Below, one piece after another: positions 5,901-38,900 of a DNA stretch of 64,000 nt. Position 1 is the first letter of the stretch, and each line of letters starts with the position of its first letter. The position numbers and the translations under genes were made by a program. Source of the stretch: Thalia democratica (taxonomy: Eukaryota); the NCBI GenBank assembly GCA_965202585.1, contig OZ241829.1, positions 6,634,001 through 6,698,000 of the forward strand, given 5' to 3'. The notes beneath the pieces were generated by a model. The model had not been told where the DNA came from, did no database searches, and saw nothing but the letters and a program-made list of their open reading frames with translations.

Positions 5901-8900
5901 ATGAATTTGATCTCAACTGTCATTTGTAAACTTTTTTTAACTTGATGTTCATAGCATCAAAAACTCTAGTTTCATTTATTTGCTTGTTAAATACTTTTTA
6001 TGTAAAACTAGTAATCAAAGTTGTTCGTTGAGAAAACGTAAATTGAAAAACAAAACATTAATTTTCGTACCTCTGCTAAAAGTAGTTTGTGTTAAAACAT
6101 TTATACTGAAAATGAATAGTTATAACTCACTGGTTGCAACTTCGACTCGAGTCTTTTCTCCCTCCAGCCCGCTCTTGCTCACGCTGAAAACTTCTATGAC
6201 GTAATTCGTATTCCAGTCCATGTACTCCAGCTTGAAGAAGTATATGACGTCATCGGAAGTTCGCATCAGTTTAATTTCGTTATAGTCATTCTTTCTTTCT
6301 AAGTTTTCGTACCTGGAATAGAAATAATATTAAGCTTAAGAACGAACTATTGTTGAAAAACTAGTGACAAAAATTTGCTTGTTGTGGTGAAAATGTTGAT
6401 TGCCTTTTAACTATATATATACAAACGTACACAATATACTGACTTTTGTTGCAAACTTTTGAAGTGTTTTCTAAATTTAAAATGAATGTGTTTTAAAGTA
6501 CTAATGGTAATGTTTTATAAGTGTAAAGTTAAAGTAGATTTATAGTTCTTCTACTATGTGTTTTTATACTAAGAGTACTTTGGTTTGTAATGTAAGCATA
6601 AACTAGCAGTAATGACTATTTAAGTAAAGAAGTAAAAACAGACCACAAAACATATTAGTAAGTTAATTAATAAAAGTTTACTACCTCAGTATGACGTGGC
6701 TGAAGTTCGATTGTGACGTAGGTGAAGCGGAAACGTCGATCCTGTTGTACGTGACGTCATCAATTTCTATTGTGAGCGGTGCGGGTGCTTTAAAAATATT
6801 GTATAAAGTTAGCTTGGTATATCAGCACTTTGGTGTACAAACACAACTTATATTATTAGAGCTGCTGTGAACAACTAAATTAGCAGAGAAAAAAAATTAC
6901 CTTAAAAACTACTTAAAGTCAATTTTTAAACATTTTAAACTTTTTGATTTTAACCGCCGTATCAATAAGAGCTGTTAAAGTTAACACCAAAGAAGTTATT
7001 TCTTGAACTAAAACACACAAAATAAACTTTTGCTTGGTACAGCTGTTTCTGCGTTTAATACGCGTCTTCAGCCAAGTTTTATTCAACGAAAAGCAAAGTA
7101 CAGCAATAAAATTATACAAAATTAGGTATTACGTAATAATAGAATAGTTAGTTGATTTTAGACAAAATCAGAATAGTATATATATATATATATATACACT
7201 TATACTAACACTTACCTGTCTCAACTTCATCGACTAGCTCCCACTCGCTTTCTATGTTGCTCCTGACTCCCTTCACGAACACCTGGTATTCCACGCCATA
7301 CGTCAGGTTGAACCAGTAGTATGTCAAGGTGGCTTCGTCGTGACTTTCTGGGATACTCACAACCTGAAAGGTACGAACATCAAAATGATATTTTAAATTC
7401 GAATTTTCGATTTGCAGCCAAATGTTTTCGTCTTGGTGAAACTAACTTCACTCGTAAGACCTTCATTTTGAAGGGGTAATGTTAGTGTTTGTTTGGCCCA
7501 CATGTCAAAAGTGTTGAGAATTTTAAGCAAGAAATTGTTTTAAGTCGCAAAGTAACTGTTTGAAACAAGTTAAGATATTTTAATCATTACTCGGTTGTTT
7601 TTTTGCTCAAAAAACACTGTTTAAGAACTTTTAAATCTTCATAATACAAATTAAAAACAACTGTTAGTTTTTTGCTGTTGTACTAGTTGTACAAATAAAA
7701 ACTGTATAAGTGTAACTAAAAATAAAAGCACATTTAAACTGGTTACTAAATAAACGAAACAACTATACCTTTGTTTCATCTTCGCCGTTCTCACTCCTGA
7801 CACGAAGGTGGAACTCGTTGAACTGGTTATCAACGTCGGTTTCCATGGTAACCATCAGGTGGCGGGTTCCGAACAACGACACCGAAGTTGAAGGGGCGTC
7901 CATGGATTCTGGATGAAATTTTACTTTAGAAATATTTAGTAGGACTGTGCTATTTCGTTTTTTTTTTGTTGAAAGATTCGAAAAGCTTAATGTTAAAGCA
8001 AAAGACTTTCATCAAATGTAAAAAAATATTTTTATATTGGTTTGAATTAAAAAGTTGATAATATAAATAAAAAGTTGGTTAAGATATAAATTCTAAAACA
8101 AACCAAGTCTATCTTCAACGAGCAGCGGATTCTTGCTCCTGACTCCGTTGACTTCATAGGAAATTTCAAACATGACGTCATCATTTGCGTAGTCGCTCGG
8201 AATTTCGTTGATGAAATAGGTGGGATCGGTGAAATTTGTTTCGTAGGAGGAAATTTCCCTCTTTTCTCCAGTCGCTTTGTCCACGTGGTATAAGTTTACC
8301 CTGTTTATGTAAGTTTATGAAAACAATAAACTTAATTATTTTCTGTAATTATTTAATTTCTAGTGAGGCTTTTTGGCAAAGAAATTCTAAAGTTGCTATG
8401 TTTTACAATCTTAATAAAAAGTGTTTCTTTTTAACTAGATAAGGTAGAAAAAGCCTACTTAAAAATCAGAATTCTCAGTTTTAAAAAGCACTTTTAAACC
8501 AAAACGCTTATACCCACAATAAGGTACCGAGCTACGCTACTTACCTGACAGAATCAATTTTGTCGTATATTTCCGGTTCGGGGTGAGTGAAAAATATCTC
8601 GGCCGAGTCTGTTGTCGTGAGCACTTCCGCTACTGGTGTTGGCACGAAATCTGTTTGAAAAGTTATACTTTATATTTTCTACTGTAGAAAAATATTTCAG
8701 TTTTTGTGAGTTTTTCCTGAACAGTTTCATGGTCGCAGTATGCACATAAACTATAACTGTATAAAAGAAAAACTTAAAAAATACAAAGCCTAGGTTATCA
8801 ACTTAAACAAATATAATTAAACATCTAACCTGTCTTCACATTGTCGAACATTTTGTAGAACTCTTCGCCGTTGCGCTCAACCTCCACCACGAACACGTAC

Positions 8901-11900
8901 TCTTTATCCGGAACCAGATCCTCGAAGACGTGCATTATGACGTCATAGTCGTCGCCGAACTCCTCCTCACCCACTCGAGTGAGGCCGGTGACGTCAGCGG
9001 TGACGAGTTTTATGGTGACCCTGTCGCTTCCTGGGTTCAGCGTGTACTTGACGCCCACGGAGTCCATTGAGGTCTGGTACTCTACCTCTCCGAAATCGAA
9101 CTCGCCTTTGGGAAAAATCAAGTAACAATTTATAACGTTGTGAAAAGTACAGAGTGAAGAAAAGTTGAAGGAGTTGATGTTTTAGACTGTTACGGTTTAG
9201 TTCGAAACACTATGGCTTGTTTCCTTTGAAAAAGTCATAAAATGATGAAACCTTAGCATAAACTTAATATGTTTAGCTTAATATCGGTAAAGTTTAAAAT
9301 ATTTTCTAGTGTCAAACTCATCGTAGTTGGTCTATTAAAATATAACTTTGGTTTTTATAACATTTGTTTTAGATAAGGAATAAAACTACTTGTGAAAGTG
9401 TTTCTAAAACTTTGAAAACATTTTATAAGGTCAAAACAATTCTCACCGATTGCAACTTGCTCGACAAAGTACCAAGGTCCCTCGACTCTTCCGTCATTTT
9501 CCTTCACAAAAATATTCTGGACTTCCCCAAAACCGAGAACGCCCCACTCGTATTCAAAGTAAGAACCAGGGCCGACGTCGGTGGGAATCTGGAAAGATCT
9601 GGTTTGGTTGATGCCGAATTCGTCCACCAGTTTCAGTTGGAATCTGGTTGGAAGTGTCAATGAATGAATGTATAATTATACTAATGTGCACAACTTTTAC
9701 AATTTGTTTACGAGATGAGTTGTTGTAATTTATGAGATTACGTGTCTTGTACAAGATGAGGTTTAACATACAAAGACAGGCATCAATACTAGCTACTACA
9801 TTATATAACGATATTCAAATTTGTTTTCAAAGTAAACTTTAAATTTAGGAACTATTTCAGCATAAGCACGTTCATATATTTGTATAACTTTAGAATTAAA
9901 AAAAAAGTATTTCATTGTTATATGTTCAGTTTATAAGTAGAAAAACTGTGGCCATCAACAAAAATTTTCATACATTATAATTTTAGGACTTATATCTTGA
10001 TCTCAGGTATTTTTAAACGTTCTAGTTTATTTTATTTTAGTTCACTTACTTGTTGTTTTTATTGTCTTCAGTTGCTTTTATCTTAATCCTGAGGAAGTTT
10101 TCATCGTCAACTGATACAATTGCATTAGGTTTTTCTAAGTTCTCTGAGAGTAAATTAACTTGTTTTAAAAAATATTTAGTTTACAGGTGTACACATACTT
10201 TTAGAAACCACTTAATTATTTTTTTTTTTGTTTCAACAATATTTTAAAATATAACTATTTAATCTTTAAAATAGTGTACGGGCTCTGAAACTATACGAAA
10301 GTTTTAGGTTCGAATGTTGCAAATAAGTACGAAATAGTTACTGCCGACTACAAACTAAACAACTTGAGATTTAAAAGCCGTTTTAAATTCAAACCAATCA
10401 ACATATAAAAACTGACTCATTTCAACTTCAATGTACAGCGGCTGCCTTGATATGACCTCATCAACAACGTAATACACGTAGAACAACAACGTTCTGCCGG
10501 CGTACTGAGACAAGTCGTCGTAGTACTTGTTCAGCACGACCCCGCGCATTACGTCATCAGATACCAAATCAGGTACCGGGTTGCCGTCGTCACGTTTCAA
10601 GAATACATAGAACCTGTGTGAAATTTTATTTAAAAAAAAAGGTACTTTTTAGTCAAAAAAGTAGTATAAAGACTAACGCAAGGTTTTTTTATTTTAGTCA
10701 TTTTTTAATACAAAGTCTCAAATAAATGCTAGTTGTACATTCAAAACACCATTATTTATCGTTTTCAACAATATTTTTTAAACTTTTGAGGTGAAGAAAT
10801 ACAAACTTACTACAACATTGAAATATTATATGATTACGTTAAAATAGAGTTTTAATAAAAACTTTTGTCATCTGCAGCATTACAACTATTCTAATAAAAA
10901 TAGTGCATAATATTGACAAAATTCAATACCTTGTAAAGTCGATAGTATCAGTTATATTTGGATCAGCAAGGATTACTTCAGCTGTTTCGTTTGAATTTTT
11001 GACTTCACCAACTGGCGTGGGTGGGTAGGCTGTGTACAAAAAAAATAATTTTATCAATGTTTTCACCTTAAAAATTTGTTAATAAATCTTTAAATACGTT
11101 TAGTTTTTAATATTTTAGACGAAACAGGATATAAGTATTTACTTTTTTATTTTGTATATATATATTTTTAATCAACACAGTAACTTCACATAAACAAAAA
11201 GCTTGGTAGGTGTAAATTAGTTTAAATCAACAAAAAGCTTGTCGTTGTCTTTATTTTCAAAAAAGTTCTCACCTGTTTCAACCGAGCCGATTTTTTCCGA
11301 ATAAGAATACCCGTCCTCGTTTGACTCTATTATGACGTCATAACCGCTTCCCGGTTTCAAGTTGACGAAATCGTGTGTGATGACGTCAAAGCCGTCGATG
11401 TCAATCGTGACGTCGTCTTGATCGGTCTGTGACGTCATGACCAACCGAAGCTTCACTTTGTCTACGTCGTCATGGAGATCGAAGTAAACGGAAACTGACG
11501 TCATGCCGGAAGTGACGTTGCCGTTTCCGAACACAAAGTCGCCTGCAACGTTTGTGAAATTTTCAAAAAGATGCTATTTTGTATCGATAGAAATAATACT
11601 TTTTACAAAAACTTTCTGTAGTTTTTTTTGTTTTGAATAAACTTAACAAATGTCATAAATGATATTTGCTTTAGTTTTATTCTCAAAACGTTTTAGAACT
11701 TATCGTACAAACCACTAGGAGTTTTACATAAAGTCAACAAAAAAACTTGTTTAAAACCTGTGGTAATCCCATCAACGAAATACCATGGGCCTTCAACTTT
11801 TCCATCGAATTCCTTAACCAGAACTCTGTAACTTTCTCCTTTTCTCAAGTTAGTCCAGTAATAATCGAAAGTATCGTCTCCATCGACAGTGAATTGTTTT

Positions 11901-14900
11901 ATTTGCTCGTTTCCATCTTCATCGACAAGTTTCAAGTAAAACTGGTTGTTTTTGTTGTTTTCAGTGAGTTTTATTGAGAGCTTCAGGTTATTTTCATCGT
12001 ACACTGTAGCTGATGCATCTGGCTCGTTAAGATCGTCTGTGGCATGAAGTATTTTTTGATAGAACCAAGCATATATGTGTTACTACACACAAAAAATAGG
12101 TGTTAATCAAAACACTGAAACATTGAAGTAAAAAGCTTAATGTACCTTGCTAAACTATTGTCTTAATTAATCTTTGTTTAAAGGAATGATTTCTATCTCT
12201 GTTTTGATCAACATTACTTGTTTTACACAAAACAATCTTTTCAAAGCATATAAGTGTTTTAAAACAATTCTCACCCAAATCAGCTTTCATGACAAGGGGA
12301 ACGCTGCTTTCGACTCCTCCAATCACATAGCTGACTGAAAACGCCATCTTTTTGTTGGCGAACGGAAGCAACACAGATTCATTGTAGTATTTATCCAGTA
12401 CTAATCCGTCCAAATAGTTCAAATTCACAAGATTTGTGACCTCTCCGCTTTCGTCGACCTCGTACAAAGAAAACCTGTTTATTTTAATTGAGTTGAATAT
12501 TTATGAGGAATTTAAGTTAATTTTAAGCGGGCTTGGTGTTATAAAAAAATATTAAATTAAAAAAATAAGACTATTGCTATTAAACTGTAGTAGACAAACG
12601 AAAAGTTTCAATTCGGTTTTATTAAATTACAAATAGTGGATAAACATTGAAAATTATAAAAGCAGCTAAAAAAACCTTGTCTGATCAATAGTTTGTTTAA
12701 TATTCGGATCAACTAGGACAATATGAGCTGTCACATTTGATGTAGTAACTTCTCCTATTGGGGTTGGTGGGTAATCTATCAAAAGTTTCCAATTTTAATT
12801 TTCATATAAATATTGCTGGAACTTTAAGCTAAATAATGATTGAAATAAAAATTCCTTATTTTTAACATTTCTTTAAGTCGGTTATTCAAAGCTAAAAATG
12901 TATCATTTATATCCTACCTGTTGTAATAGTTCCTATGTTTTCCGAATAAAAGTATCCGTCCTCCGAAGTTTCAATTATGACGTCATGTAAGCTTCTAGGT
13001 TTCAAGTTAACAAAATCGTGAGTGATGACGTCAAATCCGTCAATGTCAATCGTGACGTCATCTTGGTAAGTGCTCACTAATCTGAGTTTCACTTTGTCCA
13101 CGTCGTCATGGAGATCGAAGTAAACGGAGACTGACGTCATGCCCGAAGTCAGGTTGCCTCTTCCGAAATTGAAGTTATCTGTGAAGTTAAATGAGTGAAT
13201 AAAGTTTAATTATTTTATTTTTTGTACAAATAAACTTTGAGATCAGTGCATATCTAGTGGTAATTTTTCTAAAAAAAACCAAGTTGTATCAACTTGAATG
13301 GATTATATTAAAATAGATTTAACTAAACATTTTTAATCGATTTATAAAGTATATCATGGTAAAACTAGTATGCTTTTCTTAAACATACCTGTGTTGACTT
13401 GATCAACGAAATACCAGGGGCCTTCTACTTGACCATCGAACTCTTTAATCAAAACTCTGTAACTTTCTCCTTTTCTGAGGCTAGTCCAGTAATAATCGAA
13501 AGTGTCGTCTCCATCGACAGTGAATTGTTTAATTTGTTCGTTTCCATCTTCATCGACAAGTTTCAAGTAAAACTGGTTGTTTTTGTTGTTTTTAGTGAGT
13601 TTTATTGAAACCTTGAGGTTATTTTCTTCGTACACAGAGGCTGACACGTCTGGTTTGTTAAGATTATCTGTAATAAAAAAATCAATAAATTAAAATTTGT
13701 TTTTATAGTACCCAATTTTGTTCGTGTCAATTAAAATATAGAAAATACTTGAGTAAAAATCACATTGTACTTTTCTGTATTGTAACAAAGTTGGTAAAGG
13801 TTTTAATAAAATTATTAGACAACATTTTATCAATAAGAACACACATCTGACATTTTATAAAAGTAGCATGCACCTATATTTGTTACAATTTATCTATATT
13901 AATTACAACGGTTTTTCAACAATAAACTAAAATAAGTGTCTCAAATTACAAAAATCTCACCCAAATCAGCTTTCATGACAAGGGGAACTTTGCTCTCAAT
14001 TCCTCCAATCACGTAGCTGACAGAAAACGCCATCTTTTTGTTGGCGAACGGAAGCAACACAGATTCGTTGTAGTATTTATCCAGTACTAATCCGTCCAAA
14101 TAGTTCAAATCCACAAGATTTGTGACCTCTCCGCTTTCGTTGACCTCGTACAAAGAAAACCTGTTTGTTTTAATTGAGTTGAGTATTTATGAGAAATTTA
14201 AGTTAATTTTAAGCGGGCTTGGTGTTATAAAAAAAATATTAAACTAAAAAAAAAACTATTGCTATTAAACTGTAGTAGACAAACGAAAAGTTTCAATTCG
14301 GTTTTATTAAATTACAAACAGTGGATAAACATTGAAAATTATAAAAACAGCTAAAAAAACCTTGTCTGATCAATAGTTTGTTTAATATTCGGATCAACTA
14401 GGACAATATGAGCTGTAACGTTTGATGTGGTAACTTCTCCTATTGGAGTTGGTGGGTAATCTGACGAAAATTTTGTTTAAACTACATACATATAAGTTTT
14501 ATAAACCTAAGGGTAAGTGTTTAACAAGATAATAATAATGTTTTTGTTTTATCTTGTTTCTTTAAATCTATCTATCAAGCTAAATAAATTATTGTATAAG
14601 TATTACCTGTCGTAATAGTTCCTATATTTTCCGAATAAAAGTATCCGTCTTCCGATGTTTCAATTATGACGTCATAAAAACTCCCTGGTTTCAAGTTGAC
14701 GAAATCGTGAGTGATGACGTCAAATCCGTCAATGTCAACAGTGACGTCATCTTGATAAATGCTCACTAGTCGAAGTTTCACTTTGTCTACGTCATCATAA
14801 AGATCGTAATAAACGGAAACTGACGTCAGATCTGAGGTCAGGTTGCCGCTTCCAAAGTTGAAGTTTTCTGTGAAACAACATTAGCTATAGGCATTAATCA

Positions 14901-17900
14901 CAGTTCTACTAAAAAAAACAGATAGTATTGGTTATTATGGTTAAGTTTCATAGGGTTTTGTTACAAAAATTTGAACTTTGCACATTTCTAAATAAAACTA
15001 TTTAGGTTTTCTTAAACATACCTGTGTTAACTTCATCAACGAAATACCAGGGACCTTCAATTTTTCCATCGAACTCTTTAAGTAAAACTCTGTAACTTTC
15101 TCCTTTTCTCAAATTAGTCCAGTAATAATCAAAAATGTTGTCTCCATCGACAGTGAATTGTTTTATTTGCTCGTTTCTATCTTCATCGACAAGTTTCAAG
15201 TAAAACAGATTGTTTTTGTTGTTCTCGGTGAGTTTTATTGATAGCTTTAGGTTATTTTCGTCGTAAATTGTTGCTAATGATTCTGGCTTGTTAAGGTTGT
15301 CTGCAGGTGAAAAATAATTGTAAAAGTGCAACTTTTTACATAATTCATTTTGGTTTGAACTTAAGCATAAGAATGTTAGAAAAAGTTATCGTAAATTTTC
15401 AGTATAGGTAGGTGCAAAGTAAATGTATGTTTAAATTAGTCATACATTCACGTAAAACCTTTTATCGTTTAACTTCTGTATAAAACTACAACCGACCTAG
15501 ATCAGCCCTGATGATGAGAGGCTCCTTGCTTTCAACTTCGTTTATATAGTAGCTGACGGCGAAACCCATCTTTTTGTTTGCGTACGGCACAAGTTGTGAC
15601 TCGTTGTAGTATTTGTCCAACACCAACCCTTCCAAAACCTTCCACTCGATCGTACTGACTGGTTCTCCGTTGCCGTCGAGTTCGTACAAGGAAAATCTGC
15701 GATGAAAAAGTTTAGGGCATGGTAATCTTTCAGAAATTTAATTTATGTAAAGTTTGTGAAATCGTGCATGCTAAATAGATTTAAGCTTTCGTTGTACTAC
15801 AGCTCTTTCTATAAAGTTTTATGTTTAATAATAAGTCCGTTGGGTAAAAACATGTGTAACTAATAAATAATACACTAGAATTTAGAATAAAATTACTAGT
15901 TTGCGACTTTTGTACAAAAAGTAATGCACCAAAACTACTAACCTAGTCTGATCAATGGTTTCTTTAATGTTTGGATCAATTAGAACAATATGAGCTGTCA
16001 CATTTGATGTGGTCACTTCTCCAATCGGGGTTGGAACAAAATCTGTTGTTAATTAGCTTTGTTATCTAATGCTAAGTAATCAAGATAAGAAATACATTTA
16101 CTTAAAAGTTCAACCAGAAAAAACTCTACCAATTATATTATTAGTAACTTTGAATCAACTAAGATAGAACAAAATGTTTATAAACACGTTTAATGAAAAA
16201 TAGTACTAATTAAAATTGATAAAAATATTTCTTACCCATGTGGGAAATGTATGCTATGCGATCGAAATGGTAATAAAGGAATGGTTAAAATCACTGATAA
16301 TTTGAAATTAAAAATCGGAAAATTAATTAAATTAAAAAAGAAATTAAATTGTAAAAATTTTGGGATCTATGCGGCAGAATGCATGGAATGTAATGAATAT
16401 TATGTTGGACAGACGATAACATCCTTTTCGCAAAGGTGGTGCTCGCATAGATATAATTGAAAAAGCATGAATAAGAACGAGGTTAACGATCGAGCTGCAC
16501 TTAAACTTCATTATAACAAAAATCATCCAACAAAAACTAAAGAACTTGAAAATGCTTTCACAATAACTTTTTTGGACAGCTCAGAAGATCAAACAGAACT
16601 AGATTTTTAGAAAGCAAATGGACAAATAAACTACAAGCTATAACTAATATAAACAAAACAATACTACCTTTTTACAGATAAACAATCAAACTAAAAAAAC
16701 TTTTAATTTTTTAGTGTACTTAAACTTATTTTTGTATATTAAAACTTTATGCCTTAATCTTTCCAAAATAATTTGAGTTCTCCTTTTTTATTTAAACCTT
16801 ACTTTTAAAACTTCAATTAGTACGTAAAAAAGTTACTTTATCTCAAGAAAACTAATACAAGTGGTATAAAATGTTATTATTTTTTACCTAAAATTAAAGA
16901 TGAGTGTTACGTCACTATATTGTTTGTTTTCACTTTTTTATGCTAAACTAAAAATTCTCTGTTCATAATTCTTATATCTGCTTGAAAATGATTTTTTGAA
17001 ACAAGTCGTAGATTTTTTAAGCAAAAATATTGCAGATTTCTTTTGTAATTTTAGAAGTATAACTTCCTAAATAATTAACTACGATCAAGAAAAAGAGAAA
17101 TCTAATAAAGAAAAGTATACTGTGCTGGAAAGATTTAAGGTAATTTTAAATTAATTTGTACTCCAATTCTAATTGATAATGAAAACAGTTATTTGATACT
17201 AGATGTAATCATGTATGTTAAAGAAAATAAGTAAATAAAAGTAAAAAATAAGTATAATAACCTGTCATGATGCTATCAATCTTTTCCGAATAAAAATGTC
17301 CGTTCTCTTCCGTTTCCATTATTACGTCATAAACGGTTTCCGGCATCAAGTTGATGAAATCGTGAGTGATGAAGTCAAAGCCGTCTATGTCAATCGTGAC
17401 GTCGTCTTGATCGGTCAGTGACGTCATGACCAACCGAAGCTTCACTTTGTCTACGTCGTCATGGAGATCGAAGTAAACGGAAACTGACGTCATACCGGAA
17501 GTGACGTTGCCGTTTCCGAACATAAAATTACCTGTAAAAATTTTCGTACTTTTAACATAATATATCTGTTTAAAAATTGTTTTTTGTAATCATTTAAAAA
17601 TATAAAAATACTCATACTATTATTTATTCAGCTGCTATTGTTTGTTAATTAGTATTAATATGAGTAAAACCATATCTTTTAAAATTAAGAGACATTACTA
17701 GTTAGTTAAGTATTTTTACAAACCTGTATCGACTTGATCAATAAAGTACCAGGGGCTCTCTATAAGACCGTCGACTTCTTTGATAGCAACTGTGAAAGAC
17801 TCCCCTTTCCTCAGGTCTTGCCAGTAATAATCAAAAGTATCGTCTCCTGCAACGGTGAACTGTTTGATTTGCTCGTTTCCTTTGCTATCGACGAGTTTTA

Positions 17901-20900
17901 GGTAGAACTTGTTGTTTTTGTTGTCGTCGTCAACTTTCATGGAAAATTTGAGGTCGTCTCCGTTGTAAATTGTCGCGTTGTTGTCAGGTTTATCAATGTT
18001 TTCTGTTATAACAAACAGTTTAGAACATACAAACTTACAGTCATTTAAGAAAATAGCTTTGGTTGTATATACAAAACATTAAAATTATCGAAAACAAAAC
18101 TTCGTTTAAATTTGCTTTTAAGCTTTTGTTTTCTTTTAAAAAAGTACCTAAAGTATCTCGAGTTAAAAATAATTAGGACTTCTACCGAAAATGGTTACCA
18201 AATGCTGCAAAAGACTAAAAATTTAATTTGATTATGACGGTAAAATCATATTTATGCAAAAATAGGCACTAAGTTTTATATAAATCGTTCCAACTGTAAC
18301 TACAACTCACCCACGTAATTTATTTATCATATTTGTATTGTTAATCTTCATTCAGATTTATAAAAAATGTACATAAAAATATCATAGTTTATTTTTACAT
18401 AGGTAAATAATACTGTTACTCACCCAGGTAAGTGTCCATGACCAGTGGCAGCCTGCTTCCAACGCCCATTATGACGTAACTGACCTCGAACCTTAACTCT
18501 TCGTCCTTGTGGCCGAACAACAGCGATTCGTCGAAAAACTTATCCAGTACGAGTCCATCTAACAGTTCCACGCTGACTGTTTCGGTTGTGTTGAAGATGC
18601 TCGAGTCTGTCAAGGTGTGCACTGAAAACCTGGAAAAATTGATTCTTTAAAAATTTCTTCATAATATCGGATTTTAAGTTCATAACATCATTGAAAATAT
18701 TAAGCAATGAAAACCTGGGAAAGTTTTTGTTGAAAAAGTGGTTGATAAGATCGAAGGCAGGTTTTTAAATTCATAAGAAAGTTGAAAAAGTTAAGTAAGG
18801 TATTGTCATCAAGTTTGTTATTTATAATAAAGTAAAAACTTATTACACAAAAACTTTGACTTAATTCACGTCAAGTAAGTTAAGTTTTGTTGTTAAATTA
18901 GATTGCGAGAAATGCTTTAAAAAATGCCCTATTCAAGAAAACCGTGTTGATTATTTTACATTTAGTTCATCAAGCAAAAGTAACCTAGTCTGATCAATAG
19001 TTTCTTGAATGTTTGGATCAACTAGGACAATATGAGCTGTCACATTTGAAGTAGTTACTTCTCCAACTGGAGTTGGTGGGTAATCTGTACGAATTAAGTG
19101 AGTAATGTAACTTTTGTAGAAAAATAGTCAGAATTTTTCAAGAAAAAAAAGTTTCCAATGTTGCGTTTAATTATTTTCATAGCTATTTTTATCAGATTTC
19201 AAAAGTTGCATGCTGCTAAATGTATTAACAAAATTTATACTAAATTCCAATACAAGATGATTTACAACTAAATATGACGTCACAAAGAAACCTAACCTGT
19301 CCTCACTGTGGCTACGTGGTCCTCGTAGAAGTATCCCCTCTCAACCGCTTCAACTGTGACGTCATAATCCTTTCCTGGTACTAATCCCGTAAACACGTGA
19401 GTGATGTCATTGTTGGTGGTCACCAGACCGTAAACATCGTCTGTTGTGACGTCACTCAATTTAATTGTGACGTTGCTGTTGAACTCTTTGTTGTTTGTGA
19501 AGTCGACCGTGACGGTGGTGATTGAGGAAGTGACGTCAGCATCGCCCCATTTCAATTGTTCTGTTTAGCAATTAGCTATTTCAGAAAATATAAGCATTTC
19601 TTTAAAATTTACTACCATATCTTAGTTTAAGTAACGTTTTAACAAACGTCAAAAATACTACAGAAATAAAACTTTTTGTAAACTTCTTGCAACGATGTCT
19701 CCTTTCCTATACAAACTACTTTTTAAGAAAACACGAAATCACTAACTTACATCTTAACTAGTTTAAATATGATAAAATAAAACCATAGCACAAACCAGTA
19801 GTAAAAAGTCCAACAACATTCCACTCTGAGTTGATGTTACCATCTCTTCTTTTCACGCTTATTTCGTACCTATAATTACATACTTTGTAAACTTTATAAC
19901 TTATCATTTATTTTTATTATCCATAGTTAAATATTGTGTAAATTTAATTGTTTATATACTATAACTTCTTCTCACACTTATTTCGTATCTGAATTTACAT
20001 ATTTTGTAAGCTTTATTACTTATTACGTATACACTGATTTCATACCTGCTTCCCTTCTTGAAGTTGTACCAGTAGAAGGTTCTCCTGCCAACACTGCTAA
20101 ACGTGTAGTTGCGAAGATGGACCTGAAGCAGTATAAAACTTTTATTAAACTAACTTAAATTTTGTATGAGTGGAATAATGACTTGTGTAAACGATGAGTT
20201 GTTTTACTGTTTGAAAAATTTAAACAATATTTGACAAAAGTAACAAGTGCTGTTTCTTAAGTTGTAACGATGCTTTTAAAAAGAAATTTAGCAAGTTTTA
20301 TGTAATAGATAATTTTATGTAATTTTTATCAGTTGTGAAAATGTTTTTAACAAGACCATAAATTAAATTTATTTTCAAGAAGAAGGTATGAACAACTGCT
20401 TTAAAGTACGCAATTTCTTACTTTGAACACAATAAAAGGCAATAAAAAACGAGCAACTTGTAACTAACTTTTCCTTCTTCGTCGACAATCTTCACGAAGT
20501 AAACATTTTTCGGATCTGTAACTTGAATGTTGAATTTGAAGCTGGAAGGTCTCACCAGCTCCACATTGCACTCAGGTGGTGAAATATTTTCTGATTCATG
20601 ATAAATTATAAAAAGTTGAACAGCGGTATTATAAATTTTATTAAATATTTGCTGTATACTGCACTCGAGTGGATAGAAATTTTGATGAAAAGATATACAG
20701 CGTTAACAATTTTGAAAAAAGGTTTTATGTTTGTGAAGTATATAGATAGTAGAAACAGAGTTGAAAAGAAAACTTTTGTGTTTATTAATTACAACTTAAT
20801 CGCTGATTGAACCAAGTTTTAAAACTATTGTTTCAAGTATAGTTTTATATTAAAACCATAGTGTTTTATATTTATTACGCAAAATGAATTTTTTTGATTA

Positions 20901-23900
20901 AAAACATCAGAGTAAAATCACTTAAACACAAAACTAGATCTAAAACAACATCTTTAATAAAAAAATTAAAAAATCTCACCCAGCGTTTCGACGATTCTCA
21001 ATGATGGGGAACTTTCCCTGCCGTTGATGACGTAAGCGACCTCGAATCCGATCTTCTCGTTTGTGTAGTTTCTCAGTATGACGTCATAGAGCATTGAAGG
21101 AGCCATGCCGTCAGCTATTCTGTCGTCTATGAGAGTTGGGGGTGATGATTTCATCGAGTACAAGCGGAACCTGTTGTGATGTAAACAAGGTAATTGTTTG
21201 ATGAAATTGGTTGTATATATAATTAAGATGGTAAATTTTTTGAAAAATAATATAGATGATAGAATGAATGTTTAATTAAACAAGTTTTTACTATGACAGC
21301 AAATAAAAATTCTGGTTGATGATTTTTTGATTCTATACAGCAGTTCAAACAGAAAACTGGCCTGATTACATTAATAAAGATGTGTAAAAAAAACATTCAC
21401 TTTAATACTTCTAGAACCTTGCTTATACGTTCCAAGTGTGTAAAACTTTTATACAATAAAAACAAACCTAGTCAGGTCAATCTCAACATCAATTTCTTGC
21501 TGATCCAACAAAAATACTTCAGCCGATGAAGCAGAAGTAACAACTCTTCCTTTGGGAGTTGGTGGGAATTCTAGTGGAAAGAAATATTAAAAAAATAAAA
21601 ATTAATAAACCGCCTCGTCTTAGTTTATGCTTGAAAGTTTTAATTTTAATTGTGAATCTTTTCGATATTTTAAAAATAAAAGAAATAAAAAATTCAAACA
21701 AACTTGTTCTGACTTGAGCCACTGTTTCTCTGTACTTCCTGCCTTCGTATACACTCTCAACAACAACCTCGTACTTGGTTCCAGGTCTCAATCCGTCGAA
21801 CCTGACGTCAGCTTCCAACAGCTTGCCTGGTGTTTCTCCTGAAAACCTGAACTTTTTCATGCCGACTGCGACTCCGTTCTGCTCGATTATGACGTCATAG
21901 TCGAATCCCGACAACAGGTTGTAGTCGACTTTTACTGACGTCATGTTGGAACTGACGGTTCCGGTTCCAAAGTTAAAGGCATCTGAAAATTTTAAAGTTT
22001 AGTTTTCAAATAATTTAGTTGTAATACAGTTTTATAATATTTGCTCAACTGAAAAATTAGATATTTTTGTCAGTTCGTATAAAAGTTTAGTTGATCATCA
22101 TACGATTAGTAATGTTGTATGTTATCAAAAGCTAACTAACCTGTGTTTACGTTCTGTTGGCTGAGTCTGCCGTGTTTTTTACCAACTTTTGTGTAAATTG
22201 TCAAGTTGTACTCTCCGCCAAACGCAAATCCTTCTGGGTATTCGGGTGAGGGTTTTAGTGCGTACGATTGTACCTGTAACATTATTTTTGAATTAGATTA
22301 CACTCTTGGTTGTCTAGTTAAATAAAAATGAGATTAGGTTTATTAATCTTATCTTATGAGTAAAACATTGTGAACATAATCCATGAGAAATGTACTTTAA
22401 TGCAGACTTTAGATAATAAAAATAACATTAATGATTTTAACTTGAAGTATCTAAACTTATCTACAAATCACCAACCATGGGGCCGGTTACGTCATCGCTG
22501 ACTTGCTCGCTGAACACGACGTCTCCGTTCGTGATGTCATACGCGTGTATGACGTAATAATCTACGTCACCCTCGTCAGCCACCCACGACACGCTTATCT
22601 TGTTGTCACGTGACGTCGCCTCAAAGCTGCTGATGTCGGGTGGGCCTGTGCGGTTGACGTATTTAAAATGTGTGATTGATATACATATATATGTATATAT
22701 TTAGAATTCATTTTTTGTTAAGCTTTATATTTAACTTTATAGCAATCAGTAGTATTAGTTATAAGTTTTATTTGGATTTTCTACCCGAGGTACATGAGTT
22801 AATATCGTTCAGAGTTTCTAAAAATTTCTTTAAATTACCATGATAAAATTGAAACGATTAAAACGTTGGTAGCTTTTCGCATGATTAATTACTAAAACCT
22901 GTTTAAAGAAAATTAAATTTAAAACAAACTTATAACAATGATGACAAGAGGGATTCGTCGTTTTTTTAATACAATTAATTAAAAAAAAAATTATTGACAA
23001 ACTTGTAACAATGTCAACGGGCGGCATTTTGTCGTAAATTTTGCTTCCGACTCTGAGTTGCCAGTAAACTTTGTACCTGCCGCCTCTGTACAAACTTGTG
23101 AATGTAACCTGTAAAGATTACAAGTATAATCGAGTTGTCCTATATTATGTTTATAATATACAAATTGAAATTAAACAGTGTTTTTTTTTTGACTATAAAT
23201 CGTAAATTTACTTTAAAACAATTTGTAGTAGGGAATAATAATAAACTAAACACATCGACGCATAAAGTTTTTAAGAAAGTTGAAACCCAACTTGAACAAT
23301 TTTTCTAAAACTTGAATTTTAATCTCAAAAGCAGATTAAAAGATTCGTCAACTCACCATGTCGTTACCCTTGTTGAGGTCGAGGTTCTTCTGCACCACTC
23401 CTCCCATACCGTCTTCGATCTCGAACGTTATGACTCCCTTGGGAAGTTTGTCGAACACCTCAGGTCTCAGCCGGATGCTGACCACTCCGTACTTCTCAGT
23501 TATCAACAGGTACTCAGACCAAAAGTCACCCCAGTTCGTCGTGTCAGCTGAAATTTGATTTAGTTAAAGTTAACATATTCTTTTATTGTAGTTAATAATT
23601 TTTTTTGTATAAATGTTTATATGTTGTATTACTTAAAACTTTTGTATACTTAGTTTTTTAATAATATTTTTTAGTTATTTTGCACAGTTTATTGTTGATA
23701 ATGACTTATGAAAAGTCGAAACGTCGTCTGCGAATAAATTTTAAACTTAGAATGTGTTTCTCATTGAATTGGTTATAAGTTAAAGATGTTTCATTTGATT
23801 AAAATGCATGTTCAAATCTTTATGTTTAGAGTGCAGAAAAGTTTAGTAAAAACTATGTTTTCACAGTCTGCAATGTTCTAAAAAGTTCTATTTATTGAAA

Positions 23901-26900
23901 AAAACAATTTCCTGATTTTGTAATTATTACATATTTCATGCAGTTTTTGATTCATAGCTCTGTAAACAAAAAACTACTCACTCGTGTTGTATATGAACTC
24001 TGTAGGTGTGCTGTGCAATTTTTCCTCAGTGACAGTCACCAGGTTGACAACGTATATTTTGTTCAGTTGCACTTCTTTTTGTGTGAAGTTGATAGAGTTG
24101 AGGTTGTTGTCGTTCGGTATCTGAAAATTTGTTAAATGTTTATACTTTTCAACGTCGACAGTAAAAACAATGGTAAAAAAAATCTAAAATTTTATCCATT
24201 GATTTACAAAACTATTAATAAAAACTGTTACTACATTTTGCAACTAATAAAGTTGCAAGCAAAAAAAGCTTTAAGAAAGTAAGATCACCAAAGTATTTTA
24301 AAATACGACAGGTAAAGTTCAGTTTAATTATAAACAATTAAGACTTATTCGTAAAATAAAACAAAAAACTATTAAATACCTGGAAATTGTCGATCAAGAC
24401 GTCATTTTCGTCGTCTCTCTCAAATATTTTCACCAGAACTTTCTTGAAAATTCCACGCGGTTTCTCAAACGACCAATTTCTCCTATCCCCGTCTTCAACA
24501 CGGGGGTTCTCCCTCTCCACGGGGGCTGGGGGAAGCTGCAGTTTGGTTGCCATGGCAACGTTGGGGGTTCTTCTGTCGGTGAACAATGTGAAGCGTGAAG
24601 TTTCAACTTGGTATATTTCACCAGGGGTGAGGGAATGAAACCTGCAATAATTAGAGATATTAAAAAATTTAGACTGCAAAACATTTACAAAATGGTAATA
24701 AAACTGAACAATGATATTAAAATTTTTCTTGTTTTTCGTAACTAGGTAGATTAACAATAAACATTACGGTGTCTAGCTTGTTACAAACACGCAATTAGTT
24801 GTAGTTTTAAAATATTGCTTTTATACATTACACTTCATTTGTTTTATTCAAAAGATGGTCACTACAATGTTTACTAATACAGTAATAACAAAGAGTCGAA
24901 ATCAGAAAATTATGACTTGAAACGTAAAGAAAAACTTGGTAACATACGTAGAACTTACTTGACAGTGTCGTCTATTGTTCCAACACTCTTCTCGTAATTA
25001 CCGAACTCTTCCTTGGTGCTCTTCAACTGGACCACGTAACTGTAATCGAACAGGTTGTTCATCTTTTCCTCGAGATCTTCGTCTTCCACTTCAAGATCCA
25101 TGATTAATGAGTCGGAAGTAACGTTCTCCCATGAAGCCATCACGTCTTGCAGTGGAGCTGGTTGAAGTTGTTTACTTGCAATCACACAAAAGTTAATTTA
25201 AAACTAACACTTTTTATCAATTTTAATATATTTCGGTTAGTCTACAAAATGCTTGTAAAAAAATATCTCATAAGTTTAAAGGAAAGTTTAACTTCTAAAT
25301 GCTAAATTTTTAATTTAGCTACTTATATTTGTCTTTGACAAAAAACTTGAATGCTTAAACATTTTTTACTTGAAACTTTTTTTTCCAGATATACAAACCA
25401 ATAAAACATTGTTACCGACCAGTTTTCCTGATAACTTCTCTCACCACCCCTATTCTTCCCTGCTCGTACTCGCCGACAGTGTGCGCCTTTATGACGTAAC
25501 TGGTGTCAGGTAATAAATTTGTGACGTCATAAACGTAACTCCTCTTGCGGTCCGACGTCCTCACGATTTCATCGCTTCCGATTATGACGCCATTCACCGA
25601 CCACGTGATCTGTATCTTGCTAAAGTGTTTGGTCGCCAGGGGGCGCATTCTGACGCGCAGTGACGTCATGGTGGTTCCGCTCGGGCGCGCCGGCAAGAAG
25701 TTGATGTCGGGAGGTTCTTTAGTGACGTCATTAGTTTTAAGGATGTGTGATATGTTTATAATAAGTTTAAAAAGTTTAAAAACACAAGACTTTCAAACAG
25801 ATGTAATAAAAAGTTTTTTTCTAACACTATATACAAATTTCAAACGGTATATTTGTGCATAAACAAATGATGTACTATTTCAAACGCCTTTTAGTATAAT
25901 CAAAAATACTCATACTTTAACACATACAATAAATTAGATAAAATATGGTGTTTCTATAAATCCAATTAAATGTAATTCATATAAATAAAAGTTTTATCTG
26001 ACAACCTGGGAAAAAAGTGTGGGTTAGTATCTTTTTTGATTCGAATCCGTTTACGCTCCGCTTAACGTAGACTTCGTAAATATCACCCTGTGAATGTTTT
26101 TTTTTAAATACGTAAATTCTCTTCGTTTATTTTGTACCTGTGTTACTATCTACTAGCTACATAGAAAGTTTTCTAAAAAACTCAACAAACCTTGGGATAA
26201 TCTTCCCATGCAAATTCGTATTTTCCACCTTCCAAAAGCCATCCGGGTATTTTAAAAGATTTCTCAGCCTCATCAGTTCTTTATGAAATATATAAAACAT
26301 TTAACTACTTTTTAAAAGAAAACTAGAAAATTGACAGATTAATAAAACTATCTCTGTATTATACATTTTTTGAAAACAATTTTTTCAAAAAACCTGTCAG
26401 TAACTAGTATGACGTGGTAGTCGTCACGGCGACGCTTCTTGTCAGGAACCAGGAAAGAAACCCTCAATTGGCTGTCCTTGAAGCTTGTTACCTTGGCAAC
26501 TGGAGGTTCTAGGGTATCTGTTTGACATTGTAGTTGTTGTTGAAGCTTGCATTTAACATATTTTTTTACAAAGGTTTTATTTTAGTTGCTGCGCTTTAAA
26601 AAAATGTTTTTATACTTTTTAACAAAATATAAAACATTTTGACGATTTGATATTTACTTGCTAAAAAATTACTTGTTTGAAGTGATTGAGAAAAAGATAC
26701 AGTTCAATAAACTGTTTTCTAAAAAAGAACAGATAACCTCTAACTACATTTAAAAAAATAATATAATAGATAAACCAAATCCATTTGAAGTAAATTAGAA
26801 AGTTTTAATGAAACAAAGTTTTAGGCACACATACAAGTTTAAATAAAAAAATAAAAAATAATAATATAGTAGATAGACCAAATCAATGTGAATTAGAAAG

Positions 26901-29900
26901 TTTTTTTGAAACAAAGTTTTAGGCACACATACAAATTTAAATAAAAAATTAAAAAATATATATATAGTAGATAGACCAAATCAATGTGAATTAGAAAGTT
27001 TTAATGAAACAAAATTTTAGGCATACATACAAACTTCTAACCAGTAGTGATGTTGGTGAGCACGAGGTTGTCCTCTTCAAATGACGATAAGAAGCTAGTA
27101 TGAGTGGATGATCTTATTGTGTAAGATGTTGCTGGCTTCAAGTTGCTGAAGTTAACAACTTCTTCGCTATCTACCTCATCAGCAGGTAACTGTGTTTTTA
27201 TTGATTAATATAAGAATGGTTCCTGGTACAACATAAATATAAAGGTATGTAGAAGACAATTGCAACCGTTGGATTTTTAAAACTTTTTTGAAGTAAGCTC
27301 AGTTTTAATATCCTAAAGAAAGCAAATATTTTTATAGAAGTCTTAAACACCTTTATAGATAAATTATGTATTTGATTTTTACCTTAATAGTTTCAATAAT
27401 ATTCTCTTCATCGTTGTGTTTTGATATTGTGAACTGGTATTCCTCCACGTTTCCCCTCCTCGCTTTTCCGAACACGACCCTGATAGACGTCTCAGTCGTT
27501 CTATCGAGGTCCAAGTACGCTACTGGTCTCGGTCCTGTGTTTATTTTGTAATGAATTTATAAATATATTTTATGAGTTTATAACGCATGATTGTTGTAGA
27601 TAAACTAGACTTTGAGTAAAACTTTCTTTTAAATATTTTAAATTAATTTTAAACTTTTTTTACTCTCGTTTAATATATGCTTATGAAATTGTGTTTAAAT
27701 ATGGAACTAAAACTAAAGAAAAATTATAGCTAAGCAAAATAAATAGTCTTATACTCTCAATTACTCTGTACACTTTTTGTAAATTTGCAGAAACGTACCA
27801 AGCTACGTCCCTGCTCTCAATCACTCTGTACACTTACTTGTTGGAACGTGTTTGTCATCAACCACCAGGTACTTGACGTTGTTCATCCAAGCGTGCAATT
27901 TCACTTTGTACGTGGTTCCGCTCTCAAGTCCTTCTATCGTTACATCACTCTTTTTGATCCCTCTGAAGCTCATCGGGTTCCAAGTTGTTATGGGGCCAGT
28001 TTTCACAGGTACCAAAAGCTCTACTTCGTACCTCTGAGTAGGAAGTTAGTTTGAATTATTTCAATTTATAAAGTAACAAAAATATAAAAATGACCGATTT
28101 ACACACTTTAAATACATTTACAATAGTATTCTTTCTAGCTTACTTAAATTCATTAAGTTTTTAAGCTTTTCACGTAAAACAACTTATATTTTTTATTTGT
28201 AAATCCTACTTGCTGGTATCCTAAGTAATTGTAAATTTTATTATTATCATTATTTATTTATATTTTGCACATACTTCTGCATCCGGAATATTTTCCCACT
28301 CGAGGGCAAATGAGTCGTAAGTGTGATTGAGACTTCTTATCTGGGTATCGGGATTCAGCCTACCTGAATTTAAACATTAGTTTTAATTCTAATTTCAATG
28401 TAAACCCTGTATATCTCTTATGTTTGCTAGCATGTTAACAGATGTTATAGAGGTTTAAGGGTCGTAAACCAAGTGTTCAACACCCACCTGTTTTGATACC
28501 AACATTCGCCGAGTGAAGTTTTTCATTTCCGATGTAAGAGCTGATGACTATTTCGTAACTTTTAAGTGGTTTCATTCCGTTCAAAAATGTTGCTTCGTAG
28601 ATCTTTGAAAAACATAACGAGTTTAAGATTCAAATGTTATTTTTTGTTTGAAAATACAATTTATAAGCACATATACACGCAATAGTAACAAGAATTAAGT
28701 TTTGTTTAAATAAAATACTTTAAATTAAACTAAAAAATAGTTCAATAACACTTACAGATTTGTTGCTATCAAACTGCACGGTTCTTGGCGGAATGATGTC
28801 CTGTGGACGGTCCAATCTCGTGCATTTAACTATAAAGTAATCCATTGTGTACTTTGAAACGAATTTGACATTTGCTTTGTTAAACTTTGTGCCAGCTTCG
28901 ATTATTTCCACTATTGTTGCGTCTGAAACAGTAGTCATTTAAAATTTTACTTTCACTCTAAAGTCTAGCTAGACGAAGGAAATTTGAAATGAGAAAGTTT
29001 CAACTGTCTTCTTGATTTCGGAAGCCTAAAATCTAACTCTAGAATATTTTTGAAAATAATAAAAATTAAAAGAGTTCATTTATTTTTCAAAAAAAAACGC
29101 TCTTTTATACCTTATAGAAATAGTAAAAAAAAAATACTGGTTGGTATTGCAGCTATTGTTGTAGGTTTTTGAAATCTTTGATCGGCAGTAGTAGTCTTGA
29201 ATCTGGTAGTCATTTCAACTGTAGTTGGGAGCCTTGTCGTCATATCCATAGTAGTGTCACCTCTAGTGGACACTTCAACTGTAGTCAGTTCAGCAGTTGT
29301 TGAGAACGCAGTAGTTGGTGATTTAGTTGAAATTTCAACTGTGGTGTCGGCCCCGCTCGTTGCAGGAACCGAATTAAGCTCTTGCGGAGGTTCGGTTGTT
29401 CCCCGAGTTTGAGGCTGAACCGTCTCGACTATCAGCGTCGCGTTCTCAGTTGTGTACTCGACTGTGGTGTCATAAAAAGTTGTCATCTCTTCGGTTGTAG
29501 AGTCGACTGTTGTCATTTCAATTGTTGTGTCATCTATAGTAGTCATTTCAACTGTTGTATCACCTATAGTAGTCATTTTAACTGTAGTAGGATCTCTAGT
29601 AGTCATTTTAACCGTTGTTTCGTCAGTAGTTGTACCTTGAGTCGTTTCAACAATTGTAGTTGCTTCGCGAGTTGTGAAACTTTCTGTAGTCTGTTCAGAT
29701 GTTGTATCCTGAGTTGTTTGTTTCACAGTAGTAGATTCTGCACTTGTGAAATCTTCAGTTGTAACGTCTTGAGTGGTTGCAATTTCAGTAGTAGGCTTTT
29801 CTGTTGTTACATTTTCAGTCGTTGGTTTTCGTGTAGTTACCGACCTTGTACTAGATTCGTGTGTAGTTGTGACTTCTTGAGTAGTATGGTCCTTAGTCGT

Positions 29901-35900: not shown

Positions 35901-38900
35901 ATACCTAGAAACCATCATTGTTACATATTGTTACAAACTATCTAAATAAAAAGTTTCATGTACGTTTGTATGACAATCTCATACCTAGAAACCATCATTG
36001 TTACATATTGTTACAAACTATCTTAATAAAAAGTTTCATGTACGTTTGTATGACAATCTCATACCTAGAAACCATCATTGTTACATATTGTTACAAACTA
36101 TCTAAATAAAAAGTATCATGTACGTTTGTATGACAATCTCATACCTAGAAAATATTATTGTTACATATTGTTACAAACTGTCTAAATAAAAAGTATCATG
36201 CGCGTTTGTATGACAATTTCATACCTAGAAAATATTATTGTTACATATTATTACAAACTGTCTAAATAAAAAGTTTCATATACGTTTGTATGACTATCTC
36301 ATACCTAGAAAATATTATTGTTACATATTGTTACAAACTGTCTAAATAAAAAGTATCATGTACGTTTGTATGACTATCTCATACCTAGAAAATATTATTG
36401 TTACATATTGTTACAAACTGTCTAAATAAAAAGTATTATGTACGTTTGTATGACTATCTCATACCCAGAAAATGTTATTGTTACAAGCAACCTATTGTAA
36501 TAAAAAGTATCACGCATGATTGTAGTTATGTATGGCAGTTTTGTACGTATGTTATAGAGTTTTTTGAAACATACAATCTATCTGTTTATAAAGTATCATT
36601 TATAATTGTATGACTGGTTCGTACCTGGTATCAGGTCTGAGGTTGGTGAAGTAAACCTGGCCTATCGTGGTTCGTTTGCTCTGAATCGGGCTTCCTACCA
36701 GGTTACCATCCTCGAATAGTTCCAACTGTGAAAAAATAGTTTGAATAATTTCAAGAGGAACATACTATTATTTCAGCGATAATAGTTTTAATTGTTTTAC
36801 TAACTACTTTTGTTTAAAACAGCTTTAATTAATGCATGGGTTTTATTGCAGTAGAAAATAATCTATCATATAGTGTTAAACTTTGTGTTGTATTTTTTGA
36901 AAAATAGTAACTGTTAAAAACTATTGTCGTTTTAGCAATTAATTTAGTTTACCTTTTAAGAATACGTTTGTATTACATCGTTTAAAACACTTATTAAATA
37001 AATAACTTTTTTATGGCTTAACTTACGTTATATACATATAATGAGATCAGTTAGAATTAACTTTACAGTATTCAAAATTCATACTAAGAATAAAATAAAA
37101 TAAAAACAAACTAACAATATAATAATATAATGTAAACTAACAATATAATAAAATACAAATAAAACTAACAATATAATAGTTCCAGTCACCCTTTGCTAGT
37201 TCGAAATTAATTTTTGCAGTTTGGAAGGTTGTTTCAACATTTTCAATAGTTACTGTAGCTGGCACTATAGAAATACAAAATGTTTTAATTCGTGCTTTAT
37301 TTTAAAACATTATTCCTTAAAATGGTGTTTGTTAGCTTTTATTACCCTTTTTTGTTGCCACAATTAAGCGTTTTAAGTTTTTTATAAAAACTATTCAAAT
37401 TTGAAACTTGGCTTTTAATAAATGAGCATCAAGGTTTGTACTTCAAATTTAGTTTAACAAAAAATAATTAAAACGGTTATAACAAATGTTTAAATAGCAC
37501 CTGATTTTAAGGAACTTATACAGTTGAATGATTAAATAAGTTTGAAAAATTTAATAGAAGTACGTTCATAATTCAAACGTTTAGACAAATTACATAAAAA
37601 TTTCTTTTCAAACAGTTTTACATAAAACCTTGCAAAAACTAAAGTGTTTATTAACAACAGATACATGTTAAATTAAAAAATCCTCATATTTCTTAAAATA
37701 TTCAAATTAAGTTAATTAAGAATTACTTTTAAAAGGAAATTAAGTCGATTATTTTACTCTATGTTTTCTTTTGCGGTTTAAGTTTTATGTAAAACTAATT
37801 ACGTTTGAAACACCTTTACACCACATTTTATAATTATACTTATACTTTAATTAAAAAAAAAATTAAAAAAAATGTTTTTGGTTTTCTACAAGCAAAACTT
37901 TTTTTGAAAAGAACTAAGTTTCAAACAAAGTTGTCTATAAAATAAACTAATTAAACTTAAAATCAAAAAGTTCACTTAAAAGTGTAGGTCATGAATATTA
38001 ACTTGGTTTCTTAACACACACTATATACTTTATGTATTTGAAATAATGAATTATAAATATCAAGTCTACGACGACCAAATGTATGCAAAATGCTGAAGGT
38101 AAAATACTTTCACATGTATTTCATACTGACAAGTTTTATAATTGTTATGAACAGCTAATTTACTTAAAATATTGCAATTCACTATCATTAAACAAAAACA
38201 AATGTTAAATACAAAATCTTTGAGTTTGACTATTTATAAAAAGATTATTCTTTACACTGTATATTTGTTTAAATTATTTTCAAACTAACAAGTTCTGAAA
38301 GAGTTGGGTCCGGCCACTAGTACGTACTTATCAGCGTACAGCGATGCGTTGTACAATCTGCCAGGGGTGTAACCCTCGAATTTCATGGGGGTGTTGTCCA
38401 CTATGCGGCGCTGTTCAACTTCTTGCGTTTTCAAATCCAAAATCTAGTAAAAATAGAGTTTGTGTTTATTAACATTTTAGATTACTAAAAATTTTGTACA
38501 AGTAATACGTTAAGTTGTTTGTAAGATTTACCAAACATTCTTTCAATGTTGTCACATTAAATATATAAATTACCGTTAACTGAGGTAATCTACTCTTTCC
38601 TTCAAAATTCGATTTAATACTTTTCTCTGAAAATGACCACTGAAGGTCAAATATGTTGCTAAAATTGATGTTGCAATATTTATGAAGAGGAAGTAAGAAC
38701 ATTGTTTTTTACAAAACTAAAGTTTGCAAAATTGATGTTTACGAAACAAAAAGATTATCTAAAGGTCAAGCACTACTTAAAAAGCTATTTTTTTTGTTTA
38801 AAAGCTATACTTATATTAAAATTTATAAAGAATTAGTCTATATATAACTAACAAAAATATTTTTCAAAACATTTTATAACGAGAAAACCTGTAAAAAAAA

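Follow-up and report, generated by a model that had tools for sequence, protein, structure and literature searches.

A 176-nt intron in a fibronectin-III-like domain of Thalia democratica is a ladder of copies of the neighbouring exon and was probably born by duplication

The window analysed here is a stretch of 64,000 nucleotides from Thalia democratica with a G+C content of about 31%, that is, AT-rich eukaryotic DNA. A long gene runs on its minus strand from about 25000 down to about 1300 and is composed of repeated exon families, which we call A, B, C and D. Four of the C copies are single exons. The copy with which this report is concerned, Ca (a 'Z domain' in the first-pass annotation), is split into three exons, all on the minus strand. 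Exon C1 (20469..20590) holds the first third of the domain, ends at the donor GGAAAA/GTTAGT (a slash marks a splice junction), matches the paralogues in translation and is covered by a piece of an RNA contig at 20467-20590. Exon C2 (77 nt, 20046..20122), called from the sequence, the open spliced frame and RNA contig depth, ends in AAG GGA AGC AG, which encodes K-G-S and supplies the two first bases of an Arg codon. Exon C3 (74 nt, 19796..19869) reads YEISVKRRDGNINSEWNVVGLFTT plus G and is called from the sequence and the spliced frame, with RNA contig pieces ending at about 19796 and about 19867. Spliced together, the three exons give 273 nt (phase 1-1) that are open and alignable to the paralogues. 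The intron between C2 and C3 is 176 nt long (19870..20045, minus strand) and in phase 2, with the donor GCAG/GTATGAAATCAGTGTA at 20046/20045 and the acceptor ATAG/GTACGAAATAAGCGTG at 19870/19869, and it cuts the Arg codon (AG/G) just ahead of the Tyr that opens strand F.

A structure model of the paralogue Cb is a seven-strand beta sandwich (pLDDT 89.7) whose best PDB matches are fibronectin type III domains, with TM scores of 0.65-0.73. Pfam fn3 stayed below threshold on the C domain and gave only a weak signal, on the neighbouring D domain. Judged from the model, Ca is thus a predicted fibronectin-III-like domain with its intron at the first residue of strand F. The first-pass annotation had stated that none of the six paralogous Z domains has an intron at this codon, and tblastn bears this out, as the alignments of all six (starts 18000, 15298, 13665, 12034, 9648 and 7336) are unbroken across it; four of the six are near-identical and count as one lineage. 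A further candidate domain at 1229-1063, where the exon stops a few codons further upstream and in phase 1, was considered as a closer paralogue and set aside, since the homology is too weak to use. Three other paralogue-specific introns of the domain family carry no trace of duplication, which indicates that some other route of intron gain or loss also acts here.

The sole RNA run with part of the region was a marine metatranscriptome, and a second sequencing-run search with 19770-20720 returned no RNA run with that region. The RNA contig is 702 nt long; its listed pieces are 21167-20980 and 20590-20467, and 261 nt are left downstream of 20467. Contig depth (5.51) over bins gives about 23 + 68 + 79 + 107 = 277 nt aligned to C2, C3 and D and nothing for the intron bins; the 16-nt surplus is the exon head, which aligns both to the exon start and to its copy at the intron start. 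Exons A, B, C1, C2, C3 and D account for the 702 nt, and none of it is left for the intron. In length and depth this one contig therefore fits removal of the intron from the RNA, and splicing appears to restore the unduplicated, open coding sequence of 273 nt. At 19800 and 19832 the contig has the variants of a second lineage, represented below by the metagenome contigs L003 and L004, and not those of the window haplotype.

The intron consists almost entirely of decaying copies whose source is the first 32 nt of exon C3. The reading (R)YEISV appears at three places, namely at the intron start, in an internal copy at 19988 and at the exon start at 19869. Sequence comparison places the first copy, Y1 (20030..20045), exactly at intron base +1, with 12 of 16 positions matching the exon head. 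Directly after it a 12-mer scan finds two units of 21 nt, u1 (20009..20029), which begins TACGTAATAAGT and matches the exon head at 11/12, and u2 (19988..20008), which begins TACAAAATATGT, matches at 10/12 and ends in a decoy acceptor, TTCAG/A (AG at 19990-19989). Their heads, at 20029 and 20008, repeat the first 12 nt of the exon in decayed form and come in addition to the copies noticed in the first-pass annotation; the unit of L003 orthologous to u1 keeps ACGAA. Next, in a repeat search, comes Y2 (19957..19988), a 32-nt copy of the exon head that is identical at 26/32 positions (alignment p < 0.001) and whose start, TTCAG/ATACGAAATAAGTGTG at 19989/19988, matches the exon start at 14/16. Counted as offsets within the intron, the exon's first 12 nt occur at 1, 16 and 37 with at most two mismatches and at 58 perfectly. 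All these units, like those that follow, lie on the minus strand.

On a larger scale, u1, u2 and Y2 together form a unit, E1 (19957-20030), in which an acceptor region is followed by 32 exon bases. This 74-nt unit is present three times. The live one, E3, has 42 nt within the intron (19870..19911; u1', u2' and the acceptor TTATAG), recognised by repeat search and alignment, and is identical to E1 at 59 of 74 positions. Between them lies E2 (45 nt, 19912..19956), an older copy of the acceptor junction that alignment and comparison with L003 and L004 bring out; it aligns to both E1 and E3 without gaps over 43 nt at about 70% identity (p 0.001-0.0035), a score reached by 0 of 84 control pieces from other introns of the gene. 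Each E unit thus holds an intron 3' end plus the first exon bases, lies upstream of the live junction and is decaying, as expected of acceptor-junction copies. The self-similarity of the intron peaks at lags of 119, 68, 51 and 21, and its ladder is the sole short-range direct repeat in the 18 kb of the gene that were searched (7000-25000).

Little of the intron falls outside these copies. Exon-head copies make up 40 of its first 57 nt, and the same unit, copied again, fills the other 119 nt. Both u1 and u2 consist of a 12-nt head copy and a spacer of 8-9 nt, and these two short spacers, 17 nt in total, are unlike the exon continuation and unlike either flanking exon. Two other derivations were considered and rejected. 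Each 68-74-nt unit is not a copy of the whole 74-nt exon C3, because identity drops to about 33% past base 32 (position-by-position count, L003 unit against exon). Nor can the intron tail be derived from exon C2 or the remainder of exon C3, as no alignment rose above shuffles; local alignment of the intron to exon C2 gave p = 0.98, and that of its pre-acceptor part gave p = 0.96.

The first-pass annotation had recognised that a 16-nt match between two AG/GT junctions might be common here, and for a single match this turns out to be so. Unrelated AGGT-anchored 16-mers in the window reach 12/16 with p = 0.0018, and the 508 nearby AGGT pairs in the window lead one to expect about 0.9 pairs at that level by chance; because about one such pair is expected per window, the donor/acceptor match is weak on its own. 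Taken as an unanchored local alignment, the Y1 match has p = 0.20. The three 12-mer copies within the first 57 nt, however, were reproduced in only 1 of 200,000 shuffles of those 57 nt, and chance is rejected for them; across the whole window the exon-head 12-mer occurs 23 times against 23.9 expected. The reading frame past the donor stays open for 30 codons (p = 0.02), the first 57 nt being 19 open codons (p = 0.09 for 19 or more), and the innermost spacings of 15, 21 and 21 are all multiples of three. Spacings and open frame together suggest that the first copies arose in DNA that was still coding, or that a stage harmless if retained was favoured.

Two further statements of the first-pass annotation, that the donor and acceptor copies of YEISV differ only at synonymous positions and that a third copy forms an in-phase cryptic acceptor running into a stop, are both correct. 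The four differences between Y1 and the exon start all fall at third codon positions of Y-E-I-S-V, and the decoy at 19989/19988 is in phase and reaches a TAA at 19954-19952 after 11 further codons. Such a pattern might be taken to mean that the copies are kept by selection, with the decoy serving as a regulated 'poison' 3' splice site and the silent differences reflecting coding or regulatory constraint on the intron copy. We regard this as very improbable. Polarised by the other copies, one difference is a change in the live exon (AGT to AGC) and two are changes in Y1 (TAC to TAT and GTG to GTA), while for the ATA/ATC difference the other copies give no direction. The change in the live exon is silent because the live exon keeps only silent changes, and for Y1 an outcome confined to third positions is unsurprising because three of its five freely mutable G/C positions are third positions; one of its two G/C-to-A/T decay changes improves the donor. 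It is therefore enough that the live exon is constrained and that G/C positions of Y1 decay, and selection on the intron copy is not needed to explain the synonymous-only pattern. Furthermore, E1 differs from the live exon at codon positions 1, 2 and 3, and the idea that Y1 is translated in place of the live exon head through an alternative donor and acceptor fails, as no GT/AG pair lies in a compatible phase. The decoy itself is lost in the second lineage, by a change of AG to AC (CAC) in L003 and by a 5-nt deletion in L004.

Relatives of the domain were sought in other data. A profile search with the C domains led to short open frames in marine metagenomes. Among them P0022, found on contigs L001 and L002, comes from a distant relative and is a single open genomic frame that encodes a divergent domain of this type, without an intron at this codon; its closeness to Ca does not exceed that to the other paralogues, for which reason it can be used only as an intron-less outgroup. 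On L001 (784-1519), a very AT-rich metagenome contig, this single-exon domain is followed by an fn3-like exon (...LYPNTRYMIEVQTV...), which shows that the gene family exists beyond this species.

Much closer are L003 and L004, the latter from a Tara Oceans metagenome, which carry the Cb orthologue and align to window 20008-17547 at 86-90%. Both contigs end inside u2, so that the donor side is missing, and both hold the same three units, with head copies at 9, 76 and 150 in L003. Exon C3 of the window and of this variant is identical at 69 of 74 positions, and aligned intron positions at about 88%; the intron measures 176 nt in the window and about 200 nt in the other lineage. The head copy in E2 is complete in L003 and L004, 24 nt longer than in the window, which confirms E2 as a junction copy. 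The first exon base is A in L003 and L004 (AGA, still Arg) and G in the window. An A also follows the AG in the older copies, Y2 (window and L003) and E2 (window, L003 and L004), and the G of the window's acceptor AG/GT therefore looks recent.

Reads of the window's own organism contain the L003/L004 variant at about 0.6 times the depth of the window haplotype (28.5 against 43.6), and the variant may represent a strongly diverged allele and not a separate species. Over 17200-22000 it is about 10% different in the intron-rich stretches compared, which means that either the organism is extremely heterozygous or the sample mixes two lineages. Intron sequence upstream of this acceptor is also present in a second organism represented among the reads, where it diverges from the window inside the ladder. 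The near relatives reached, L003 and L004, already carry the intron. No intron-less orthologue came up in word-index protein searches with three queries, the frames of exons C3 and C1 and the following D exon, and two metagenome pattern scans with 24-31-mers of exon C3 found neither a deeper orthologue nor the donor side of the variant.

How did a ladder of exon copies come to be an intron? We lean towards the reading that the Ca intron was born by in-frame micro-duplications at an AG/GT site and was later enlarged by duplications of its acceptor junction. The ancestral domain would have encoded ...KKGSR YEISVKRR... in one exon, without interruption. At the Arg/Tyr boundary (AG/GTAY), tandem duplications of 15, 21 and 21 nt would have copied what are now the first bases of exon C3, giving a 57-nt, in-frame, stop-free insert with a GT at its start and an AG at its end, after u2, and removal of this insert by the spliceosome would have restored the original protein. 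At this stage the insert may have been an optional, exitron-like intron. Exitrons represent the intronization of coding sequence, and the postulated first stage is like them in lying inside a coding exon, in being a multiple of three and in being free of stops, unlike the present 176-nt intron, which contains stop codons. Two more units would then have been added when the new acceptor junction was itself duplicated in tandem, in larger pieces that joined 41-42 nt of intron to 32 nt of exon head; with them would have come the stop codons and the decoy acceptor, so that the intron grew to its present length. The order of these events, and the absence of any intron at this codon before the first copy, are what we infer from the copies, from their register with the donor and from the paralogues.

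What points to birth, and not only to growth, is the register at the donor. As a tandem duplication predicts for the 5' end, Y1 matches the exon head from intron base +1 onwards, with u1 and u2 directly after it. A duplication that spans an acceptor leaves intron tail before every head copy, and it can put a head copy right after the upstream exon only if no intron stood between. The first-pass annotation had proposed intron gain by duplication, and the in-register copies, the absence from the paralogues and the apparent splicing agree with it. Two points call for correction: the 3' end of the intron is unlike the end of exon C2, contrary to what the classic (Rogers) model predicts, and the AG/GT of the acceptor is probably not original. 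That model still allows a duplication starting at the AG/GT itself, and the strict expectation that all of the intron derives from exon holds only in part. AG/GT stands at both junctions of the window; with A after the live acceptor AG in L003 and L004, the ancestral site may instead have been AG/AT, needing an extra A-to-G change to make the donor.

A comparable ladder lies about 16 kb away on the minus strand of the window, where nine 80-nt units at 35904-36624 fill the intron of another fibronectin-III-like exon (...PDTR/YEIVIQ). Its first unit stands exactly at the donor and matches the exon head at 14/19, the first 80 nt being in register (p < 0.001), and no intron interrupts the paralogous exons (44102, 47139 and 40407) at this position. 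Like the ladder of the Ca intron it reaches the opposite splice site in register, as intron birth predicts. The two cases had been called independent in the first-pass annotation. This is right in so far as the repeat family is different and the gene probably so, but both sit at the same kind of site, Arg/Tyr-Glu with AG/GTAYGA at the start of a fibronectin-III-like F strand. Two other junction copies were seen on the minus strand. At 43828-43953 a 125-nt tandem copy of an exon tail and its donor encodes the peptide RSSYSSFRGIFTK twice; the AGGT-anchored 16-mers match at 15/16, and this donor-side junction copy lies in the downstream intron. At 1482-1572, in the same long gene as Ca, the exon tail ...YSEEPLVIHTHLS recurs about 90 nt downstream as YSEEPYVVHTHLS.

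The main alternative is that an older, unrelated intron at this codon was filled by tandem duplications across its acceptor, the likeness of Y1 being chance plus donor consensus. We judge this unlikely, though it has to be taken seriously. Junction copies that merely bloat introns do occur in the window, in the donor-side copy of 125 nt (43953/43828) and that of 90 nt (1572/1482), and E1-E3 carry acceptor signals besides exon bases. Other domains of the gene often have an intron near the E-F loop, other paralogue-specific introns of the family lack a duplication trace, the 3' end of the Ca intron fails the prediction of the duplication model, and the protein and metagenome searches returned no intron-less orthologue. 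The chance expectation of about 0.9 AGGT pairs at 12/16 per window also helps an older intron. Against this reading, for Y1 to lie in register directly beside u1 a coincidence at the 0.002 level is needed, and it is needed again at the 36-kb ladder. No DNA of the intron other than the two 8-9-nt spacers of u1 and u2 falls outside the copies. The older-intron reading leaves the multiples of three among the innermost spacings unexplained and requires intron losses in at least four paralogue lineages. We consider it hardly credible that the repeats come from an assembly error or from chance alone in such AT-rich DNA. The sequence is indeed AT-rich and repetitive, and the contigs of other assemblies break inside the ladder; however, reads of this organism, possibly of the window's own sample, were also assembled independently, and a 520-nt contig of that assembly matches 19548-20067 exactly, the same units occur in two independent metagenome assemblies, and the shuffle and control tests reject chance.

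Duplication is a known but rarely documented route to a new intron. In a case published in 2011 (PMC3265369) the GT of the new donor likewise comes from a tandem exon copy, the coding sequence is recovered on splicing, the beginning of the intron looks like that of the downstream exon and the paralogues lack the intron. The Ca intron differs in having several short duplications (15-21 nt) followed by larger ones in place of one clean one, in a 3' end unlike the upstream exon end and in an acceptor AG that is apparently not simply the duplicated AG of the same AGGT. The 2011 case was also re-enacted experimentally, and the Ca intron has no known intron-less orthologue. Two fission-yeast introns, in SPOG_01682 and SOCG_00815, are built of 24-nt units that stand in tandem and derive from exon sequence close by (Zhu and Niu 2013, PMC3629103), and they are the nearest precedent. 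They share with the Ca intron short tandem units copied from the adjacent exon, a proto-splice site in each unit and EST or RNA support; they are fungal, whereas Ca lies in an animal gene, has a second layer of acceptor-junction duplications and has units that are far more decayed. In the potato RdRp the duplication by which an intron was gained spanned the border between an intron and an exon (Ma et al. 2016, PMC4974935). E1-E3 similarly duplicate the 3' end of an intron and the 5' end of the next exon, acceptor signals included, but in potato the new intron arose within an exon, while the junction copies of Ca only lengthen an existing one.

New here is an animal intron whose layers are unusually legible and which varies between alleles. 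Well-supported new introns with readable source DNA are few (ATP2A1, two fission-yeast genes and one potato gene). In the Ca intron, copying from the neighbouring exon accounts for 40 of the first 57 bases and for every later unit; a second intron of similar make-up is found at a distance of 16 kb, and the allelic variants show that change is ongoing. If birth by duplication is the right reading, this genome offers many such introns of different ages, and it becomes testable how a duplicated coding segment gains splice signals and how often an in-frame stage, harmless if retained, occurs. As a single case the intron is of moderate interest; a wider pattern would be the more valuable lead. We put forward, tentatively and as a doubtful possibility, that in this planktonic chordate micro-duplications at Arg/Tyr-Glu sites (AG/GTAYGA) at the starts of fibronectin-III F strands repeatedly seed introns that grow by junction duplication, with intermediates polymorphic between divergent alleles (G or A as the first exon base, decoy present or destroyed, a 24-nt indel). 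Were this true, intron birth by duplication would be an ongoing and observable process in an animal genome, not a rare historical accident.

Two minor observations concern other parts of the window. Intron 1 of Ca (EGK/VH, 20123-20468) and the sole intron of the paralogue Cg (ETK/VV, 7364-7768), both on the minus strand and in phase 0, lie about 4 alignment columns apart; they may go back to a single old intron or may have been gained separately. On the plus strand the region 29300-34000 has a strong excess of G over C and of T over A at a G+C of 0.39-0.43, and it contains long open frames in which units of about 39 residues are repeated many times, for example at 31686-32042.
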